Shown piece by piece: positions 7,911-43,320 of a stretch of 64,000 nucleotides of DNA. The translations under genes were made by a program, and so were the position numbers. The stretch is from assembly GCA_964234715.1 (NCBI GenBank), contig OZ174282.1; one strand, 5' to 3'. Position 1 is the first letter of the stretch; each line of letters opens with the position of its first letter. Below the pieces are notes generated by a model. That model had not been told where the DNA came from. It did no database searches and was given only the letters and a program-made list of their open reading frames with translations. The DNA comes from Podarcis melisellensis (lineage: Eukaryota).

Positions 7911-8095
7911 ACAGTAACTTCAATGTACAGCTATTCTTGGAGAAGAACTCTCTACTTCTATCAGTTAATGAAAGTACAGGAAAAGTCTCTAGACAGGACT
8001 TTTTAAACTAAGATGGGATATATTTTTTCTATAGCAAAGTTTGAAAATATCCTAATATGCTTCTCCACCAATATAGATTGATGATCTGCCAATAC

Positions 8096-8609
8096 CTTTT
8101 TCAGTCAAGCGAAGAGGGGTTCTACTGCGAGATCTTGATCGAGAACGGCTTCTCCAGCTTCTATAAGCCTCAGGATATATGGTTCTTCCAAATCCATAGT
8201 ATCTTCGGCTTCTTGACCTGCTTCTAGAGTAAGATCTTCTATAGCATGGTCTTCCAGGAGACCTACTACGTGATCTGTATCTTGGAGGAGAGCGGCGGTA
8301 TCGCCTATGGTATCTAGGATGGTATCTTTCTCTGTATTTGTAGCTACGTGATCTTGACCGGCTTCTGGAATAAGATCTTGAATACCTTCTGCACCTCCAA
8401 GAACAATTCCTTTTAGCACGTAATCTTGATCTGCTTCTTGACCTACTCCAGCTTCTGGAGGAAGAGGAAGTGCTTGAACTTGATCTTGTGGAGTAAGATG
8501 ACCTACTAGATGACCTTGAAGATGATCTTCTGCTACAGCTGCTCCTTGACCTTGAACGAGACCTTTCTTTTGGTGAACTCAAAGTCAAGTCATCCATAAA
8601 GACTGTCAT
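8096..8609 (-). CDS. RSRP1: RSRP1 first coding exon, arginine/serine-rich protein 1 (exon 8692-8096, ATG 8609)
   Basis: [19 protein letters not shown]..., long RS domain, [13 protein letters not shown] motif. Acceptor AG at 8693-8694, donor at 8094-8095. Syntenic with TMEM50A/RH. Confidence 0.93.
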
Positions 8610-10699
8610 CTCATCTGTCTTCTTGCTTGATTTTTGCTTTTCGGTATTTTTCAAACTTGTGCCTTCTGTTTTCGGTTGCCCAGTTCCCGTTCCTTTGTTT
8701 AGGAGAAGGAGGGATAGATAGAAGTTTTGATTTAAAACTTCTGCTATTGTGAACTATGACAATGTCATAACTGCATGTTTCTTCCAAGTCAACTCGGAAG
8801 CATTATTAAAAACCTTATGCCTCAAAGATTTTAAGTAGCATGGTTCAGATCTTTCATTTGACAGCCATAGAACCTCCTTTCAAACAAATATGCTTGAATT
8901 CTAGAAGCTAATGCTCCACTCACATCACAGAACGGTCAAATTAGTATTTTGAGCCACTATGGAGCTGGAGGCATTCAACTGTATGCAATATGAAGTATTT
9001 AACAATCAAGATGGCTGCTGTTATATAACAGCAGCCATTTTAGTTACAACACACTGGATCTATCATACTAGGGTATAATCACTCCCGTTTCCTTAATTCT
9101 TCAAACCACTTTTGTTCTATGATCCTGCTCTCTTCATTAAGAGTTTTATTTGTTAATTTGTGTTTATTAATAATCAAAGCAAAAATATTGACTGTGCTGT
9201 ATTACTACCACAAAGTATGAAAATTATTCTAATGCCTTAAATAGAGGAATATTTATCACTAGCAAACCATACAGGAAGAAGGTTCTGTCTGGAGCCTTGA
9301 ATCACCTAATTCAGCAAGCACCTTTGAATTGCAGACAACTAATTAAATGGGGTGGAAACATTTTAGATATAAAACATAATCAGCCAAACACTAGACATAC
9401 ATTCCCATAAGCAACATACCAATAGGTGCTGAAAAACTCCCATTCTGCTCAGGGCTTCCATGGTTCTGCTGTGGATTCCTATGAACAAGAGTTGCAACCA
9501 TTCAGTCAGTTCTTTTTTTAAATAAATTTTATTAGAATTTAAGACAAGCTACAATATTATCCTTCAGTTCGTTCTACAGAAAAATTAATACTTTCTCAGG
9601 TCCTTCCCCTGCAATATGGGGATAATACTGAGCGACATTGTACTGTGAATTTGATGCACTTTCAACGTACTCGAAGTGTTAGGATCAAGTTACTAGTCTT
9701 TTCCTAAGCATTTTTACTCCCATCTTCAACAGTGCTTACTCCCAGATAAAATGTCATCTCAATTGTTAATCACACACTGTATAATTTTACTTTCTCCAAA
9801 AGCCTCCTTAACAGAAAGCAGATTTTACTGGGCTTTTCAAAAAAGGACTCATGGTGCTCAGTATGCAAGTGCCTAAAAAATAGCACAATCCTGCCAATGC
9901 CAACCACCACTAAACCCTGCTGATTTCAAAGGAAGCATTCAAGACTGCTTTGGACATTTATCTTTGGGAAACATACATGGGATTTGGCTGTTTCTGACAG
10001 CTTATTGTTCTAATTTAGGGGGGTATGGAAAAACTAGACTGCCCTTGTGAACTCTCATGGTAGTTTACACAAAAGACACGTTTGTTCAAAAACATGCTTC
10101 ACAGCATAAATTACTACTTTACTTCAAGAGTAGACTAGGGTAGTGTACAAATTAATTAGCTGTAATCCAACGCGTGCACTCCCCCCCCCCATCTCACTTA
10201 AAGCTGGCAGCCTTTTCCCAAGCCCTTAATTATCTTTCGCCAAGTGCCACACCCGTGAACAACACATAGTAGGAAGTGAGCCCTACTGAAGGAAACAGGG
10301 CTTTGCTTACTTCTTAAGAATCATGGGCGCGACTGCATTGCTTGCATACAAAGAGACGAGAGGTTTCTGCCTGCCTCCAAGGATCTTACTGTCCCAAAAC
10401 GGATTATGGGAAAGGGAATTAACAAACGGGGGGGGGGGGACACCAAGGGCAGGAAGAAATGACCCTGAACAACTACAATTACTTCCTTGGTTTTGTTTGG
10501 TTACAATTCCGAACAAGTTAAAGAAATGCCACGCCACAAAAGCGAATTTGGAAGCAAAGAGGGCTGGCACCACAATCCGACGAGGATACTCTTCGTACAC
10601 CTACAGAAGCTTCACTTTAAATATTTTTTTTTAACCTAACAGGGTTGTCGTGAGCCCTATCGACCTTAGCCTGCCTTCCTCCCACCAATAACAGGTTTA

Positions 10700-21445: not shown

Positions 21446-22711
21446 GAATGCAATTCAGAAATCAAAGTTAGAGAGGTCACACTCATTCACACAAGTGCCA
21501 CTGGGATATTTAGCGGGAATGGGTGCTCTCTCTGATGGTCAGCCTAGAAAGCAGAATGCTGGGCAGGTGGAGCTAAGCAAGATGGAAGCTTCCACTGATC
21601 CTAGGGGTGCAGAGGTCTTGCCTACAAATGGGTCCCTCTAGCTGGAGTTCTTACACATTTTCTGCCTGGATCTGAGCTGCTTCTTTTATACCTTGCAAGG
21701 TTATCCAGTACATGACAGGCTGATTTGCACCATAGCAACCAATTATTAGGCTGCTTTTTTTCTGGGGGAGACTTAAGTACCAGGGGTGGGGAACTTTGGG
21801 CCTTCCAGATGTTGCTGAACTTCAGCTCCCACCATTTGCTAGCCCTTGGCCATGCTTGCTAAGACTGATGGGAGCTGTAGTTTATTAACATCTGGCAGGC
21901 CAAAGGTTTCCCACACCTGAACTATTAACTGAAATGTTACCATGCTTCTGAAGTTTCTGCTGGGCCTGTGACTTCCAAGTATGATGGCTCTTGTCTTGTT
22001 ACTGGTGGCTTTATGGTGGTGCTGTAGACTAGAGGCAGTGTTCTAACATTCAGTTTGTGATAGTAAGCAGCAGTTCATTTCCCATGCTGATTTCATTGCT
22101 TTAGTATTTTTCAGCTGGAGTCACAATCCACTTAGGCCATTTATGCACAGGGTTAATTGGGACATTAAAGGCAGTGGTAGCAGTAAGAAAGATGGTAGGC
22201 ATATGGGGATATAAAATTACAACTGTGGAGGCACAGCATATTATAAAATACTTAGCTCCATATATCACACTGTACACTTGGACAACTTTTCCACATTACC
22301 AATCACTCCCTTGCAAGGTGCTACAGCTGAAAGTGCACCACCTAGAAAATGCCCCCAGAATCCTCTGCAAGGTGGCAAGAATTTTACAACAGACAACCCA
22401 GTGTGGAAAGTTGTTAAAACCACTGCATTTAAAGTGCTGGCAGGGGGAGGTCAAATGAGGTAAAATCCACATTTAATATGCACGCCCCCCCTGCCAAAGC
22501 AAAATCCTCAGCATTTTGCAGGTTCAGCTGTAAATAGTATGCCTTAGAGAAAAGAAGGCGGTTGGCAGCCTCCTTAATGAAGCAGTAATGTAGTTCATTC
22601 AGTCTTGCAAACAAATGGTTCCTACGAAAAGGTTACACAACTTCTGGTGGCTTTAATGGCAGATCGACAAAATCTTCCACAACTAGTTTACTGCAGTCTT
22701 GATGCCTGTAT

Positions 22712-22738
22712 TCAATATCCAGCAGCTAAATGTGGAAA
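22712..22738 (-). CDS. RHCE: Rh30 (RHD/RHCE-like) exon 10
   Basis: FPHLAAGY-stop (human FPHLAVGF), acceptor tttttAG. Summed CDS is 1245 nt = 414 aa + stop. The gene is co-orthologous to RHD and RHCE; the symbol is given by position. Confidence 0.95.
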   Translation of the reverse strand, partial: FPHLAAGY

Positions 22739-22927
22739 CTAAAAACAAAGAAACATTATTGAATTTTTCTATGAGGAAAGGTTATAACATCTGAGGCTTT
22801 TAAGTTTAGAGAAAAGGTGGGTAAGAGGGGGCACGGTAGAGGTTTATAAAATTAAAAACGGCATGGAAAGTGGATAGAGAACAGTTAGCACAGTGACTAA
22901 TAGCTAGTGTCAAATTTAAAAACTTAC

Positions 22928-23001
22928 CTCCCAAAAAGCTTGATCATCAAAATACTTTGTTATAGGAGGTGTTTTCCAGAATTCAAAAGTTAGTAAGAAA
23001 C
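22928..23001 (-). CDS. RHCE: Rh30 exon 9
   Basis: (G)FLLTFEFWKTPPITKYFDDQAFWE, 74 nt, phase 1 to 0. Confidence 0.96.
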
Positions 23002-23083
23002 CTAAGACATTGGGAAAAGAATGCAAAACATGTACTGAAAAGCCACAAACTTTTCCCAAAATACCTTCCACTGTACCCTCTAA

Positions 23084-23410
23084 GGCCCCATAAGCACTAT
23101 ACACTGAAAGCAGTATCATACAGCTTTAAATAGTAATTGTTTCCCCCCAAAGAATCCCGAGAACTGTAGTTTGGTAAGGGTGTTGAGAGTTGCTAGGAGA
23201 TGCCTGTTCACCTCCGAGTTGCAACTCTCAGAGCAGTTTCACAGTCAATCCCTCCTCCCATGGACACTCTAGGAATTGTAGCTCTGTGAAGGGAATAAGG
23301 GTCTCCTAATTGTACTCCGCATCCTTAAGAACCTAGAGTTATGAGGATTATTTGGAGAAAGCCATTATTGTTTAAAGTGGTATGATACCACTAAACACAT
23401 AGCTCGGGCC
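23084..23410. mobile_element. PIF/Harbinger-like MITE
   Basis: GGCCC...GGGCC ends, 3-bp TAA on both sides, internal palindromy. Related sequence at ~32140-32380 and ~32720-32860. Confidence 0.6.
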
Positions 23411-23770
23411 TAAGTTCACCATTGAAGCACATCCTCCAACCATAGCTATTTGACAGTTGGAACACTAGTTTTTAATTTGATAGACCTGTATGAACATATA
23501 TGGAGGAATTGCAACTTTAAAATTATAGGCTTGCATCCCCTAGGCCAGTGTTTCCCAACCTTTTTTGGGCAAAGGCACACTTGTTTCATGAAAAAAATCT
23601 CGAGGCACACCACCATTAGAAAATGTTTAAAAAATTAACTCTGTGCCTATATTGACTATATATAAAGTAACTCTCTTTAATAGGAATCAAATAAACACAA
23701 AGAAAGTATTTTATAATTACTTTATTATGAAATAGTAAGTAAACAGAAATATGAAAAATTATAAAATACT

Positions 23771-24148
23771 TTATTCATTTACCTTTGAGGTTTGTCTCAT
23801 GAAAGTTGCCTGTTTCTCCGTGTTTTCACGCAGGCGAACAAAATAGTCCGCATTCTTGTTTTGAAGCAAAGGGTGTTTCGTTTGGAGATGGCGTTTAAGT
23901 TTGCTTGGGACCATAGCACTGTTAGCTAGCTTTTCACCACACACCACGCACAGTGGAGTTGGTTGGTTTGCATCTCCGGTGAAAGTAAATCCAAATGAAA
24001 TATAGCTTTCGCTATATTGCCTTGTGCCGGAGAATTTGCTTGAGCTAACCATCTTTGCTTTCTTTTCATGCCCACTCATACTTGGGCTCTCATCTGGCTC
24101 CAAATTTTGTTCAGAGTCCAGTTCTTTTCTTTTCAAAAACTTTTCCAT
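23771..24148 (-). CDS. Truncated hAT transposase N-terminus with BED zinc finger (125 aa)
   Basis: MEKFLKRK...[12 protein letters not shown]...[28 protein letters not shown]: CxxC...HxxxxH, typical of Buster/ZBED5/SCAND3-family transposases. Catalytic domain absent. Confidence 0.85.
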
Positions 24149-24825
24149 CACTGCAGTATCCGGCCATCCAATTGCCACTGACAAACGGATACAGACCCCT
24201 TTTTTTTTACAGCACAGCTCGCACAAATGTACACGGAACACCCTTTTCGAATTAAAACACACAGTCTCACGAGAGCAAGGAGCAGCGATTTTATATTTTA
24301 CAAAAAGAAGTCGCTAGTCCTCATGGTGACAGGGTGGAAAATATTTAAAAGCAGAACCACCTTGAGGAAGGTGGAGCCATATCACATCCTGGCAGGAGGC
24401 CTAAATTGGTGGAACGCTCAGGCCCCGCTTATTCAAAGAGGGCACCAGGCAACGTCTCAGGGTATTAAGAACCCTGAGCTAGATTAATGTCCCCAAACGT
24501 CATGGTTTGTGCCAACCTACTGACACTCCACAAAGCTTCTTAACCATGTTTGTATGAAAAAAAAATGGGGTGCTGCGGCTCTCCCAACCCACTAACTACC
24601 AGCACGCTTCAACACAATGCCGCGCGCGGCAAGAGCCCAGGCTTTCTGATCCAAGCCGCTTTCCTTAGCGCTTCCGGGCAAAGCCGAGCACATGCTACGA
24701 AGCGCCCACACGTGTACGAAAAGTCCTGGCTCAGCCGCGAGTTGGCGCAGGCAGATGCCGTCCTGGAGGCAAAAGCCGTCACATGGGGATTTTCTTCCTC
24801 CCTCCTTTAAATTTGGAACGTACGG

Positions 24826-25410
24826 CGCACGCTCCCTTCACGCCTAGGGGGATTCCCCCCTCCCCTTCCCGCTCGCTCTCTCTCCCTCCCTCCTTTGGCG
24901 CGCGCTCCCTTCACGCCTAGGGGGATTCCCCCCTCCCCTTCCCGCTCTCTCTCTCTCCCTCCCTCCTTTGGCGTGCGCTCCCTTCACGCCTAGGGGGATT
25001 CCCCCTTCCCGCTCGCTCTCTCTCCCTCCCTCCTTTGGCGCGCGCTCCCTTCACGCCTAGGGGGATTCCCCCCTCCCCTCCCCTTCCCGCTCGCTCTCTC
25101 TCCCTCCCTCCTTTGGCACGCGCTCCCTTCACGCCTAGGGGGATTCCCCCCTCCCCTTCCCGCTCGCTCTCTCTCCCTCCCTCCTTTGGCGCGCGCTCCC
25201 TTCACGCCTAGGGGGATTCCCCCCTCCCCTTCCCCCTCTCTCTCTCTCTCCCTCCCTCCTTTGGCCGCGCGCTCCCTTCACGCCTAGGGGGATTCCCCCC
25301 TCCCCTTCCCGCTCTCTCTCTCTCTCCCTCCCTCCTTTGGCGCGCACTCCCTTCACGCCTAGGGGGATTCCCCCTCCCCTTCCCACTCTCTCTCTCTCCC
25401 TCCCTCCTTT
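24826..25410. repeat. Minisatellite of 8 x ~74 bp inside the hAT element
   Basis: Unit GCGCGCTCCCTTCACGCCTAGGGGGATTCCCCCCTCCCCTTCCCGCTCGCTCTCTCTCCCTCCCTCCTTTGGC, period 67-78 bp. Confidence 0.95.
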
Positions 25411-26094
25411 TCTCCACCCACACACCTCCCTTTACGGCTGCTGTGCGCGTGCGCGTTGCTGCGACGCTCTTCCAGTCTTTCCCTGCACCATGGGAGGTAA
25501 GTGCTGGCTCCTGACGCGGGTGCGTGTGGCGCCCCCTCCCCCCCGACCGCCTTCCTCCCACGGCACACCAGGCAACGTCTCGCGGCACACTAGTGTGCCG
25601 CGGAACACTTGTTGGGAAACACTGCCCTAGGCCCATTAAATAAATGAGGCAGGTAAGTGATGTCTGTCTTACACACCAGACCATTAACATGCACATAGAT
25701 CACACAGATCCAAATTTACCATATGGCACTTTAGCGCATTTTCATCCACACATGAGTGCTTTCAGTTAAATTATTTTTCCATCTACACTAGTGGGTGGTG
25801 CTTGATGGGGTATATTATCACTCAATTTGATCCAGGGCAAATTCTCCTGCTTCTTTGTTAGTTTCTACATCTACTGACATTATCAAGCATTCTTGAAGTA
25901 TTCGCTTTATCTTTGCTTCCTTCCTCCTCTGCTACTCCACATATCCAGTGGATCATCCAGTCTAGCCCCTTGCTTGGTGCAGCATTGAAAAGGTACAATG
26001 TGTGTCCATTGAGCAATCAGACACCAGTAGCATTCAAGGAAGGGAGAGGCTTTAGCTCTATAGAAAATCACAAAGAGTGTTTGCGATAACAGAC

Positions 26095-26174
26095 CTGTAA
26101 TGAGTCCAGCCATCAGACCCAGGGAAATGATCGCGCAGGATGCACCAAGTTCAGTCAAAGCCAAATAACCCATT
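26095..26174 (-). CDS. RHCE: Rh30 exon 8
   Basis: MGYLALTELGASCAIISLGLMAGLIT(G), 80 nt, phase 2 to 1. Confidence 0.93.
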
Positions 26175-27056
26175 CTGAAAATCACAACAACAAAAACCAT
26201 TCACAAACCAGTAAATACTTTACCACTTATTCAGTGCTACAGTCTTGGTGTTTTTCCATAGGCCTTACACTCTGTTATTGATGGGGGAGAATTCCGTGTG
26301 ATCCACAATTCATATAATATGAAGTGATTTAATTTGCATTTGCAAAAACATTTGCATGAATCAAAACATAACCATTCTTTGACATTTGCACTTCTCTGAA
26401 TTTTGCTATGGTGCTATCCCAGCAAGCATGTTAATGTAAAAAAACTATATAAGGAGTGAGTGTGCCTAAAAATGTATATACAAAAATGCAACACATTAGA
26501 GAAAATGGTTTGCAAACATGTTACGTTAGGCAAAATTGCATACAAAAATATGTAAGGGGCAATGTGCAATATGATGCTGGCAGTTTTTTTGTGAAGTCTA
26601 TCACAAACTGCAGCAGAAATGCAGCCACCTGGACCAAAGAGAAAATTAAAGGAACAAAATTGAGAAGATCAATCCTTCCTTACTATCTCTGTCTGCTGTT
26701 TTTAAACTTTCTCTGTTTAGAGAGCCCTTTTCAGACCAGCTGATCTTACAAAGACCTCCTTCACAATTGCCATTGAACCACAGGACACTGCAGAGAAACT
26801 GGAGGGCACACATTTCAAGTGTGTTACTACTGACCAAGAGCTTTCCACTGACTTGTTTGAATTGAATTTTTCCTAGATGATGTCCAGTACTACAGTGGAT
26901 AGTATTTCCTTCCCCCCCCCCTTGCCTTTAAAACATTTTAAAATAGAACCCTCAAGGTGGTGCAAGCTTTCTGTCTACACACGTCCTGGTGGGGTCCAAT
27001 AACTATCTCTTGAAATGTTCAGAGGAGATAACATTTGAGAGAGAGGTTCCACCTAC

Positions 27057-27187
27057 CCTTCTAGGTCTTCCTGGCTCTCTATTAGGATAAGAATAATGCG
27101 GGTGATCCCTCCAATCAAACTGGGCAGGCCAAACGTGTAAAGAACTCCACAGGTATCATGAATCCTGAGTGCTGGTTCCAGGCGCTT
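27057..27187 (-). CDS. RHCE: Rh30 exon 7
   Basis: KRLEPALRIHDTCGVLYTFGLPSLIGGITRIILILIESQEDLE(G), 131 nt. Confidence 0.95.
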
Positions 27188-27609
27188 CTGAGTTTGATGG
27201 AAAGGGTACATGTGAAAAACAAAAATGCTGTGTAAACACCATAAATTCAAAGCACATTTCAATCATGCAACTCCCCCAAAAGGAACTAATTTAATTTCAC
27301 GCAGCTGCAATTTCCAGCACCTTCAATAAACTTCAGTTCCCAAGAATCTTGGGCAGGGAGTAGTTTAAATGTATGGGATGTGTGCAGCCAAAGGGTCATG
27401 TGAATAACCTTTAACGCTGCAAATCAGAAGGTAGCTGTTGAAGGGCTTGTGGGCTGACTATAAACAGTACTGTCTTGTCTGCCACAATGCCATGGAAGCA
27501 CGGAGAGCGGGACACTGCTTAGCAGTAGATCAGGAAGGTTCAGTTTCTGGCATTAAGAAGCTTATATCAACAAGACTGGAAAAGACTAGCATACGTTGAA
27601 AAAGACCCA

Positions 27610-27815
27610 AGAGAGCCTGTGTGGCATAGTGGTTTGCAGTCAGACCAGGACCAGGAAGACCAAGGTTCAAATCCTCAGTCAGCTATGAAGCTCACTGGGC
27701 CAGCCACAGTCCACAGCATTGATGTGAGTATAAAATGGAGAGGGAGGAATACCATTTATGCCACTTTGACCTCCTCAGAGGAAAGGTGGGGTATAAATGT
27801 AATAATAAATAAATG
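27610..27815 (+). mobile_element. tRNA-derived SINE
   Basis: A box TGGCATAGTGG, B box GGTTCAAATCC, AATAAAT tail. Reverse-oriented relatives at ~17930-18000 and ~48230-48365. Confidence 0.75.
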
Positions 27816-28168
27816 GATAGGGTTTCATTTACCAAAAGAGTCAAGGATTCCCCAACTGCTCTGTAAGATGACATGTGCAGGTCTCCTTCTTGGGGCTGGC
27901 CCTACCATTAGGCAATGTGAGGAAGCTGCCTCCAACAACAGATGATTCAGAGACAAGAAACAACTTTAAGCACCATCCCACTAAACCTCAGATGACGATG
28001 AGACTCGGTCTTATCACCACTGTTGAAATGAGAGTCAACTGCCAACCTGACTGGCTTTTGCACAAGGAATAGAGGAGGCGCCATTTTGCCCTTTGCCTCA
28101 GGCAGCAAAATGCCCGCTTCTCCTTGCCCACTATCCAAAATGAGATGGTTCAAAATGGGAACTGTTAC

Positions 28169-28306
28169 CTGTAAAAAGGCAAAGCCAAGTACAGAGCCTG
28201 CCCCGGCCGCCAGACCTAAAGTCATCGCAATCCAAGGGTAACGGATGATGGGAACTGAGAAGCCAACAGCAACCCCACCGGCCAGAGTGGCATTCTGGAT
28301 ATGGGC
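28169..28306 (-). CDS. RHCE: Rh30 exon 6
   Basis: AHIQNATLAGGVAVGFSVPIIRYPWIAMTLGLAAGAGSVLGFAFLQ, 138 nt. Confidence 0.97.
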
Positions 28307-28834
28307 CTGTAGAACAAGCAAAAGAAGAAAGTGAGGAATTAAAAAAGTTGGCTGGAAACGTTTTACTGATGAAAAACTCTGGTGTGTGTGGGTGTGTAGA
28401 TGTTTGTGTGGCTGCACGTGTGCATGTCTTGAACCAGGATTTCCAGCAGCCAGGCACCAGTTAGGTTGCAGAACCAGCCTGTCCACCATATAGCAGCAAA
28501 TTCAAGTCGGGCAGTTCTAGCTGACCATTAGGTCTTGTGCAACAAGCCAGTTCCCCCAGAAGATCAGACTTTCTGCGATAAGGAAAGTGATGGGGACCTG
28601 CACTGGAAGTGTGAGACGGGCACTTGCTTTGAAGCACACATTCTCATTTCCACACAAACAAATGAGAGGGAATGCTCATTAAATAACCAATGCAAGCAAA
28701 TACGCAAGCCAATCAGGATGATTTCTCAATAAATAGGTTGCTTGGAAGTGTGAGCATCTCTCTTCCGGCTGTCTCTCTAGTTAGGAGAAAGTCCCTCTAG
28801 ATTGAAAGTTAGAGAATAGGAACTTCTGACTTAC

Positions 28835-37860: not shown

Positions 37861-38002
37861 CTGGGTAGATCGCAAGGTCTTTTTGAACACTTTGATGGTC
37901 ATATGAAAAGAAAAAGAAAAATATAAGGATGAAAGCAGCTTCCAAAAAGAAAATGAGCCCAGGCAGACGAATCCGGAGACTTGGAGGATACTGAGAAGAC
38001 AT
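37861..38002 (-). CDS. RHCE: Rh30 exon 1
   Basis: MSSQYPPSLRIRLPGLIFFLEAAFILIFFFFFSYDHQSVQKDLAIYP (human MSSKYPRSVRRCLP...), donor CAG|GTAAGC. The short unglycosylated first loop indicates Rh30 rather than RhAG/BG/CG. Confidence 0.96.
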
Positions 38003-41839: not shown

Positions 41840-43320
41840 TTTGATTGGCCAAGACTCAGTTTCCCGTGTCACTTTACTTAGCCGTTACACCCAGTCTCAC
41901 CTCTCGCATTCTCTATTGGTCCTCCTTAACACCATTTATTCAAGTCAGGAATTTATTGGATACATAGCCTGTCAGTCAAGCTGGAGGGCGGGACTGTGAG
42001 CGAGCTGTGTTAGAATGCAGCGGGATCACCATTCTTTGCCTCTTTTTACCTTTGGTCCTTGGATTACGCGAGCCTTTTAGTCGGGGTTTTATTGGCCAGT
42101 AGCCCCGCCAATCAAACCATAGGGGCCCGTACCTAAATGTCAAAGCTAAAGGCGGGATACAAAAAAGCTCCTTTCTTTCATTGGGGGATAGCTAGGCTGC
42201 TCCTCCTACTTTGGTACCAACTATTCAACGACTGGGTAGTATCGCCATCAATTTAATAAATCCTTACTTTCACGGGCTGCTCTGAACGCCGTTCTCCCTG
42301 CTGGGCGGGACTCGTCATCCTAGAAAAGGGCGGGACCAGAAGCGTCGATCTCCTCATTGGTTCTGCCGCCCGCCTCTCTACCCTCTAGCCCCATGTTGAT
42401 TGATTCGCTCGTCCGTCGACCTCATGTTCTGCCTCCCGCCGATTGGCTTGTGCCTGAAAGGAGGCGGGGCAGGGCGCGGAGGCTGCGCGCGGGGACGCGG
42501 CGGCGGGGAGGGACAGATCTGAAATTATTTTTTATTTCTTTGTTTCCTAGTCGGGCGGGGGGAGAAAAAAAAGGAGGGAGAAAGAAAACGGGGACAGGGG
42601 GGAAAGGCGAGCCAAAAAAAAACCCAAAACCCGGAGACCCGCTGAGACTCCCTCCGGCGGGTCCCTCGGACAGGCTTGGATGTTGTCGCTGTGACCCGGG
42701 CGGGGCAGGAGCGGAGAAGGAGGCGGCGGCGGCGACGGGGGGCAGCAGCAGCAGCAGGCGCCACCACCACCGCCGGGCCAGGCCGGGTTGGGTCTCGCCG
42801 GGCCGGACGGGAGGATGAAGCGCCGGAGCGCCGACTGCAGCAAACTCCGGCGGCCGCTGAAGCGGAACCGCATCACTGAGGGCATCTACGGCAGGTATGG
42901 CCCGCACCTGCCTCGCCCCGCCCCGGCCTGTCAGTGGCATCGAGGGAGCCTCGCCGGTCCCTCCTTCCCTCCTTCCTTCTCTTGGCTTTGAGGTGAAGCA
43001 GGGGAGGGGGCGCCTTCGCCGCCTCAGCCCCCGACGGGGCTTCCTCCTCCTCTTCCTGCTCACACGGAGGAGGACGACAGGCGAGCTTGGCGGGACTCCC
43101 CTCATCCCCACAGAAACGCACACGCGCACCACTTTCACACGCCCCCCCTTCATTATCTCCTCCACACACCCCAATTGCTTCTCCCCTCATGCAGCCACTT
43201 CCCGCCCTTTGTCCGCCCTCGGGCTCCCCTCAGGGTCCCGCTTCTTTGGCGCTCTGGGCCATTGTCTTCAGAAGAAGCAAAAGTAGCCCCCTCCCACGAC
43301 GCCCGACACTTCTCTCCTCC
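41840..43320 (+). promoter_or_regulatory. MACO1: MACO1 CpG-island promoter
   Basis: CpG-dense, about 8 CCAAT/ATTGG boxes and several GGGCGG boxes in 41840-42480. Confidence 0.85.
42815..42894 (+). CDS. MACO1: Macoilin (TMEM57) coding exon 1; rest of gene apparently beyond the window
   Basis: MKRRSADCSKLRRPLKRNRITEGIYG(S) (human MKRRNADCSKLRRPLKRNRITEGIYGS), 80 nt, donor CAG|GTATGG. Exon 2 was not found by eye up to 64000. Confidence 0.97.

Follow-up and report, generated by a model that had tools for sequence, protein, structure and literature searches.

The gene names SCAND3 and FAM200A denote Buster-derived genes. Among 94 fusion events between host genes and transposases in tetrapods, capture proceeded mainly by alternative splicing, and in eight of the nine traced cases the splice acceptor used lay just upstream of the transposase open reading frame (ORF) and was supplied by the transposon (Cosby et al., bioRxiv 10.1101/2020.05.07.082677). 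Buster-group hAT transposons are flanked by target site duplications (TSD) with the motif nnnTAnnn (PMC3517528). Here we describe an element of this type in intron 8 of an RH gene of the lizard Podarcis melisellensis, located in a 64,000-nt stretch of DNA (assembly GCA_964234715.1, contig OZ174282.1), which is referred to as the window. The most probable reading, to which we assign a probability of roughly 0.8, is that of an ordinary young non-autonomous Buster-type intronic insertion, which contains a truncated transposase N-terminus and is removed together with intron 8.

The exon structure of the RH gene was examined using contigs of organism A, a close relative whose DNA has an empty insertion site; contigs from four runs, RNA-type as well as DNA, were aligned to positions 22450-28449 of the window. 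In three studies, each represented by an RNA-type run (X1, X2 and X6), the contigs include an RH mRNA of ~2.1 kb. Its joints, 22738/22928, 23001/26095, 26174/27057 and 27187/28169, are bounded by GT..AG on the minus strand in every case and do not occur in the DNA run X24. Transcripts thus support both the RH exon model and the phases, with exons 6-10 confirmed by RNA joints, and exons 1-5 recognised only as ORF pieces. The features surrounding the insertion are as follows:

26095-26174, minus strand: RH (Rh30, RHD/RHCE-like) exon 8, 80 nt, ending in phase 1, supported by sequence and by the RNA joints 26174/27057 and 23001/26095
26093-26094, minus strand: GT of the exon 8 donor (...ATT ACA G/GTCTGT), with one codon base left over
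23002-26094, minus strand: RH intron 8, host of the transposon, 3,093 nt, its joint with GT..AG ends present in three RNA-type runs
22928-23001, minus strand: RH exon 9, 74 nt, phase 1 to phase 0, encoding GFLLTFEFWKTPPITKYFDDQAFWE
22712-22738, minus strand: coding part of RH exon 10, encoding FPHLAAGY and the stop, with the RNA joint 22738/22928

The start of exon 9 completes the codon left open by exon 8 as GGT, and the exon ends in phase 0 at ...TGG GAG/GTAAGT, after encoding ...KYFDDQAFWE. Human Rh30-type genes consist of ten exons, with an exon 8 of 80 nt and an exon 9 of 74 nt, and the 80-nt exon 8 and 74-nt exon 9 of the lizard gene fit this structure. Exon 6 matches the ammonium-transporter/Rh family of Pfam (PF00909), as well as the solved Rh proteins RhAG, RhCG and RhCE, and exon 9 matches residues 385-409 of human Rh(CE) with E=5e-5, versus E>1 for both RhAG and RhCG. 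We classify the gene, on its predicted Rh fold and Rh30-type C-terminal tail, as one of the Rh30 (RHD/RHCE) type.

Elsewhere in the window, an ORF of 200 aa that consists almost entirely of Arg/Ser repeats (8052-8654, minus strand) resembles the RS-rich exon of RSRP1, the neighbour of RHD in human, and an RSRP1-like ORF near RH would fit conserved synteny of the RH locus. At 42400-43300, some 4 kb upstream of the first RH exon (near 38000), there is a G+C-rich, CpG-island-like stretch in which both strands contain long but spurious ORFs, and which is probably the promoter of a neighbouring gene. Within the introns, the contigs of organism A differ from the window by an additional 27 nt behind 25669, an additional 11 nt behind 27985, and scattered substitutions, which are ordinary intron divergence between two taxa.

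The element itself spans 2,079 bp and consists of several parts of different origin, as follows:

23546-25624, minus strand: non-autonomous Buster-type hAT of mosaic structure, 2,079 bp, in sense orientation relative to RH, defined by its terminal inverted repeats (TIR) and TSD
25625-25632: upstream copy of the TSD, GCCTAGGG in the minus-strand reading, 8 bp
23538-23545: downstream copy of the TSD, GCCTAGGG, identical to the upstream copy
24824-25410: tandem array of eight 73-bp units, GC 0.68, with a CpG observed/expected ratio of 0.77 versus 0.32 for the window
24163-24441, minus strand: piece A, 279 bp, with the candidate acceptor at 24179-24178 and a 3-nt overlap with piece B
23774-24165, minus strand: piece B, with a 125-aa ORF, from the 5' coding region of a transposase family that is multicopy and of Buster type
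23771-23777, minus strand: junction of piece B with the A+T-rich 3' part, where both RNA and DNA contigs show loose ends (23774 and 23777), with a TAA just past it
23546-23777, minus strand: A+T-rich 3' part of the element, common to a very abundant short MITE form, with two AATAAA motifs followed by a T/GT-rich stretch

The TIRs are perfect over 14 nt (CAGTGTTTCCCAAC, at 23546-23559 on the plus strand and 25611-25624 on the minus strand), and the 21-nt arms with 95% complementarity that can be drawn at the ends represent this TIR together with part of each duplicated target site. As TA occupies positions 4-5 of GCCTAGGG, the duplication follows the Buster motif nnnTAnnn, and not the Ac motif nTnnnnAn. 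A hAT element in intron 8 of RH, in sense orientation, had been proposed in the original prediction, and this is borne out by the TIRs, the TSD, the coordinates and the RNA-supported exons.

The ORF of the element (24148-23774, minus strand) starts with an ATG at 24148, encodes 125 aa and ends with a TAA at 23773-23771. It contains a zinc finger of the form C-x2-C-x16-H-x4-H, in which C67, C70, H87 and H92 are invariant in an alignment of relatives. Pfam searches matched zf-C2H2_12 (the 'Spin-doc' C2H2 finger, E=3e-5) and zf-BED (E=0.0036), both under the curated cut-offs. An exhaustive database search gave 1,846 relatives of the ORF, of which the full-length ones are 596-669 aa long with a hAT dimerisation domain (PF05699), and which are named SCAND3-like or FAM200A-like by NCBI. 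The exact ORF was not present in the protein collection searched, and the best relatives in the database are only 74-85% identical and come from other phyla. The closest ones (P0166-P0171, 71-85% identity) include proteins of very distant animals, namely a mudskipper fish, a social spider (85% identity over 82% of the query) and a bryozoan. Horizontal transfer of a Buster-type hAT family would be expected to leave such a patchy spread at high identity.

Comparison with these relatives indicates where the transposase was cut. At the place where the ORF ends, the relative P0002 reads ...KTAKVNERALKASYHVAELVAK..., and its frame continues as KVNE-RALKASYHVA past the stop of the window ORF; the family contigs of organism A likewise run on in frame past 23774, as R-A-L-K-A-S-Y-H-V-A. 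The stop codon of the ORF thus arises at an internal deletion or recombination junction at 23774-23777. The ORF had been described as an intact 125-aa ORF, and while the ORF is indeed present, it is not an intact cassette, as it represents the first ~125 codons of a transposase of ~600-670 aa that was cut at the deletion junction. Only residues 1-125, the zinc-finger end, have been kept, with ~225 bp between the ORF stop and the 3' end of the element, which is therefore non-autonomous; a full autonomous transposase, with zinc finger, catalytic core and hAT dimerisation domain, is not found in it.

The same relatives bear on a sequence near the end of the ORF, AAG/GTAAAT, which had been put forward as a possible exon end at 23783 in phase 0. 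Its position and phase are correct. Relatives and the family contigs read through it, so that GTA AAT represents the Val-Asn codons of an uninterrupted transposase gene. A transposase intron at this site was ruled out, as P0002, other relatives and the organism A contigs read KVNE-RALKASYHVA unbroken.

Transposase sequence was present in RNA-type contigs of organism A of 531, 1,098 and 1,909 nt, and the frame was seen to run on in those of 1,098 and 1,909 nt. The presence of RNA-type contigs with a continuing transposase frame suggests that the parent family is transcribed in organism A, and hints that this autonomous family may still be active. The depth of DNA contigs, which is a poor measure of copy number, suggests about a dozen or more family copies in organism A.

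The boundaries of the transposase piece are sharp, with contigs of all four organism A runs covering exactly 23774-24165 at ~99% identity and then diverging on both sides. Since the breaks at 24163-24165 and 23774-23777 are the same in DNA and RNA contigs, they are junctions in the DNA rather than splice sites. An origin of the junction between pieces A and B by splicing was also considered and rejected, as the upstream sequence of the family copies has no fitting acceptor. Beyond the first of these breaks, piece A was found in organism A inside a 3.76-kb contig of about single-copy depth, which is otherwise unlike the window and in which the homology ends at 24163. Piece A is also covered by low-depth contigs from the RNA-type runs, and may have been captured by the transposon from host DNA. 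Further upstream, the 1.4 kb preceding the ORF is CpG-rich (CpG observed/expected 0.77-0.86, versus 0.32 for the window); neither the array of eight 73-bp units nor its CpG-rich surroundings matched any contig of organism A at ≥90% identity. The array may consist of expanded subterminal repeats or of captured CpG-island DNA.

At the other side, the A+T-rich 3' part has a different upstream neighbour in its own family. Short forms with the joints 23775>25556 and 23568>25561 were detected in organism A, and the summed contig depth at both element ends is very high, although depth is not equivalent to copy number. These end matches at high depth and the short-form joints indicate that the element ends belong to an abundant MITE-like family. 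Within the window itself, blastn searches with the element gave zero sibling copies.

This composition allows for two origins of the transposase piece, as a remnant or as cargo. In the latter, which amounts to Pack-type capture, gap repair in a MITE-like hAT would have brought in sequence from a second transposon copy and from host loci, namely the zinc-finger piece together with piece A and the CpG-rich DNA. The mosaic interior with breakpoints at overlaps of 3-4 nt, the presence of piece A within an unrelated organism A contig whose depth is close to single-copy, and the derivation of the ends from a far more abundant short form are all consistent with such capture, but the transposase type and the TSD motif are both Buster, which fits a simple deletion derivative of an autonomous parent. 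We consider capture possible but doubtful, and the verdict on the RH gene is the same with either origin.

The age of the insertion can be gauged from organism A, where a DNA contig of baseline depth aligns to 25625-27807 of the window from its own position 105, and a piece of equal depth starts at 23434. As the interval 23434-23537 is exactly 104 nt, the two flanks would be joined with a single copy of GCCTAGGG, which represents an empty site; this conclusion follows from the alignment coordinates, as the listed joints do not include this one. The empty site, the perfect TIRs and the perfect TSD together argue for a recent insertion, which is either lineage-specific or polymorphic. Between the ORF and the family contigs of organism A there are seven differences, of which six are non-synonymous and one is synonymous, and this small sample weakly suggests that there is no coding constraint on the ORF. 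Neither fixation nor purifying selection is seen, with the site empty in organism A and a ratio of non-synonymous to synonymous differences of 6:1 in this small sample. Since the copy has diverged from its family by only ~1-1.5%, an intact ORF of 375 nt is to be expected.

We therefore favour the reading of an ordinary insertion, in which a young Buster-group hAT inserted, in sense orientation, in intron 8 of a lizard Rh30 gene. The interior of the element is a mosaic of a CpG-rich stretch with the 73-bp array, the 279-bp piece A and the first 125 codons of a SCAND3/FAM200-like transposase, and the junction between this transposase piece and the A+T-rich 3' end is a breakpoint that created the stop codon. 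Most likely the element is lost when intron 8 is removed and plays no part in the Rh protein, and the intactness of the ORF and the fit of its phases would be what youth and chance, respectively, can provide. Carriers of the insertion would then also splice RH canonically.

The ORF could alternatively be expressed on its own, if the CpG-rich 5' part of the element were to drive a short transcript encoding the 125-aa zinc-finger protein. Truncated transposases of other families are known to damp transposition, and this protein, which lacks the catalytic and dimerisation domains, could act likewise on its own family by competing for transposon ends. The presence of an ATG, of all four zinc ligands and of poly(A) signals is in agreement with such expression, as are the raised CpG ratio of the upstream 1.4 kb (0.77-0.86 versus 0.32 for the window) and the family transcripts with the coding piece in the RNA-type runs of organism A. 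However, the CpG-rich part may be captured cargo or array rather than the promoter of the family, with no counterpart found in organism A, and the ORF shows no coding constraint. We regard stand-alone expression as improbable.

The remaining alternative is that the element acts as an exon trap, in which splicing of a part of the RH pre-mRNA of carriers joins exon 8 to the AG at 24179-24178 (or 24152-24151), with the transcript then ending at the poly(A) signals of the element, or in which a stretch of 395 nt replaces exon 9. The product would consist of Rh residues 1 to ~384, with the conserved cytoplasmic tail exchanged for the transposase zinc finger. The splice-like sites that would be required are the following:

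24178-24179, minus strand: candidate acceptor AG, exon start 24177, phase-compatible, 67% pyrimidines with no run >3
24151-24152, minus strand: candidate acceptor AG, exon start 24150, phase-compatible, with a poor tract of 44% pyrimidines
23781-23782, minus strand: donor-like GT of AAG/GTAAAT, exon end 23783, phase 0, matching 8 of 9 consensus positions, and Val-Asn codons in the parent gene

The phases were correctly described in the original prediction, as the G left over from exon 8 and the TG at either acceptor (exon starts 24177 and 24150) form a GTG codon in the frame of the ORF, compatible with the phase 1 in which exon 8 ends. The arithmetic of the proposed cassette is also right, as the 395 nt from 24177 to 23783 and the 74 nt of exon 9 are both 2 mod 3, and so have the same phases. 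The caution that such matches can arise by chance was equally justified: in the open stretch upstream of the ATG three of the seven AGs are phase-compatible, versus ~2.3 expected, and the odds of a donor phase match are one in three. The phase match is at chance level.

Splice sites were compared by consensus matches and pyrimidine content. The polypyrimidine tracts had been called moderate; pyrimidines make up 67% at 24177, in runs of at most 3 nt, and 44% at 24150, and both sites are weaker than the four real RH acceptors, which have 72-83% pyrimidines and runs of 5-10 nt, versus a longest run of 2-3 nt at the candidates. Intron 8 contains 277 AGs, of which 8 equal or exceed the one at 24177 by this crude pyrimidine measure. 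Its location in piece A means that the 24177 acceptor is not native to the transposase gene. The sequence AAG/GTAAAT is the best donor-like site in intron 8. Both poly(A) signals were found as proposed, with one AATAAA (23775-23770) overlapping the stop at 23771-23773 and the second at 23726-23721, and with a T/GT-rich stretch following them.

An exon trap would be reasonable in kind, given that most of the traced capture cases involved an acceptor in a similar place relative to the transposase ORF (Cosby et al., bioRxiv 10.1101/2020.05.07.082677). The compatible phases, the sense orientation, the place of the 24177 acceptor within the best 8 of 277 intronic AGs by the crude pyrimidine measure, the donor-like site at 23783 with 8 of 9 consensus positions and the highest rank in intron 8, and the two AATAAA motifs with the GT-rich stretch, which could close a terminal exon, are all in its favour. 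Against this, the pyrimidine tracts of the acceptors are short and interrupted (longest run 2-3 versus 5-10 nt), 395 nt is long for an internal exon, and use of the cassette would require the skipping of exon 9 to maintain the frame, though the splice sites of exon 9 are strong. A terminal exon, formed by an acceptor, AATAAA and the GT-rich stretch, would be a more plausible route than an internal cassette. The family RNA contigs cross 24150 and 23783 unspliced, which weighs little as their context differs. The insertion is also missing in a close relative, its ORF lacks signs of constraint, and a DNA-binding finger tethered to the membrane has no obvious use. Among the joints listed, the RH mRNA contigs of the three studies display the canonical order of exons 8-9-10 only, and since organism A has an empty site, this canonical 8-9 join is what would be expected of any animal lacking the element.

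Overall, it is very unlikely that carriers of the insertion make any detectable chimeric RNA, and far less likely again that such an RNA would have a function. Likewise very unlikely is a minor RH isoform in carriers that joins exon 8 to 24179-24178 and ends at the poly(A) signal of the element, giving an erythrocyte membrane Rh protein with its conserved YFDDQ...FPHL tail swapped for a transposase zinc finger.

In the favoured reading of an ordinary young insertion, the element may be material from which transposase capture could start, and it has no demonstrated effect on the Rh gene. As a dated example of how host-transposase fusions begin, with an empty site in a relative, intact ends, an intact ORF and frame-fitting sites, it is of modest value. 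If carriers were to make a chimera, the first step of transposase capture would become observable while still polymorphic, and with a membrane protein as partner, and this would raise the question whether swapping the Rh tail alters attachment to the membrane skeleton.

The closest described systems are the internally deleted hAT elements, such as the Ds-type derivatives of Ac and Buster MITEs such as Mar (PMC3517528), which are like the present element in having short perfect TIRs and an 8-bp TSD. The motif nnnTAnnn of this TSD is common to the element and Buster MITEs such as Mar (PMC3517528). Further similarities are the loss of the catalytic and dimerisation parts, the ends common to an abundant short form, and the recent insertion, polymorphic or lineage-specific. 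In contrast to these internally deleted elements, the lizard element has retained a translatable N-terminal zinc-finger piece of 125 codons, and has added mosaic DNA, such as the 73-bp array and a piece that is found elsewhere in a relative.

Domesticated Buster genes (SCAND3/ZBED9, ZBED5 and FAM200A/B) form the second group for comparison, as the relatives of the ORF are annotated under such names, and the N-terminal C2H2/BED-like 'Spin-doc' finger, followed by ...ASY.VAE..AK..KPHT..., is common to them. These domesticated genes are full-length and immobile, whereas the present ORF is a 125-aa remnant inside an element that looks mobile.

Finally, the host-transposase fusions CSB-PGBD3, SETMAR, GTF2IRD2 and KRABINER (bioRxiv 10.1101/2020.05.07.082677) differ from this locus, where the insertion is not fixed, shows no purifying selection and still has intact TIRs and TSD, and where the partner is a membrane protein with 12 helices instead of a nuclear regulator. 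In relation to these fusions, the element corresponds to step (i) of the model of Cosby et al., in that it is a sense-oriented intronic DNA transposon with an intact DNA-binding coding part, AGs just upstream of the ORF, and a fit of the phases.
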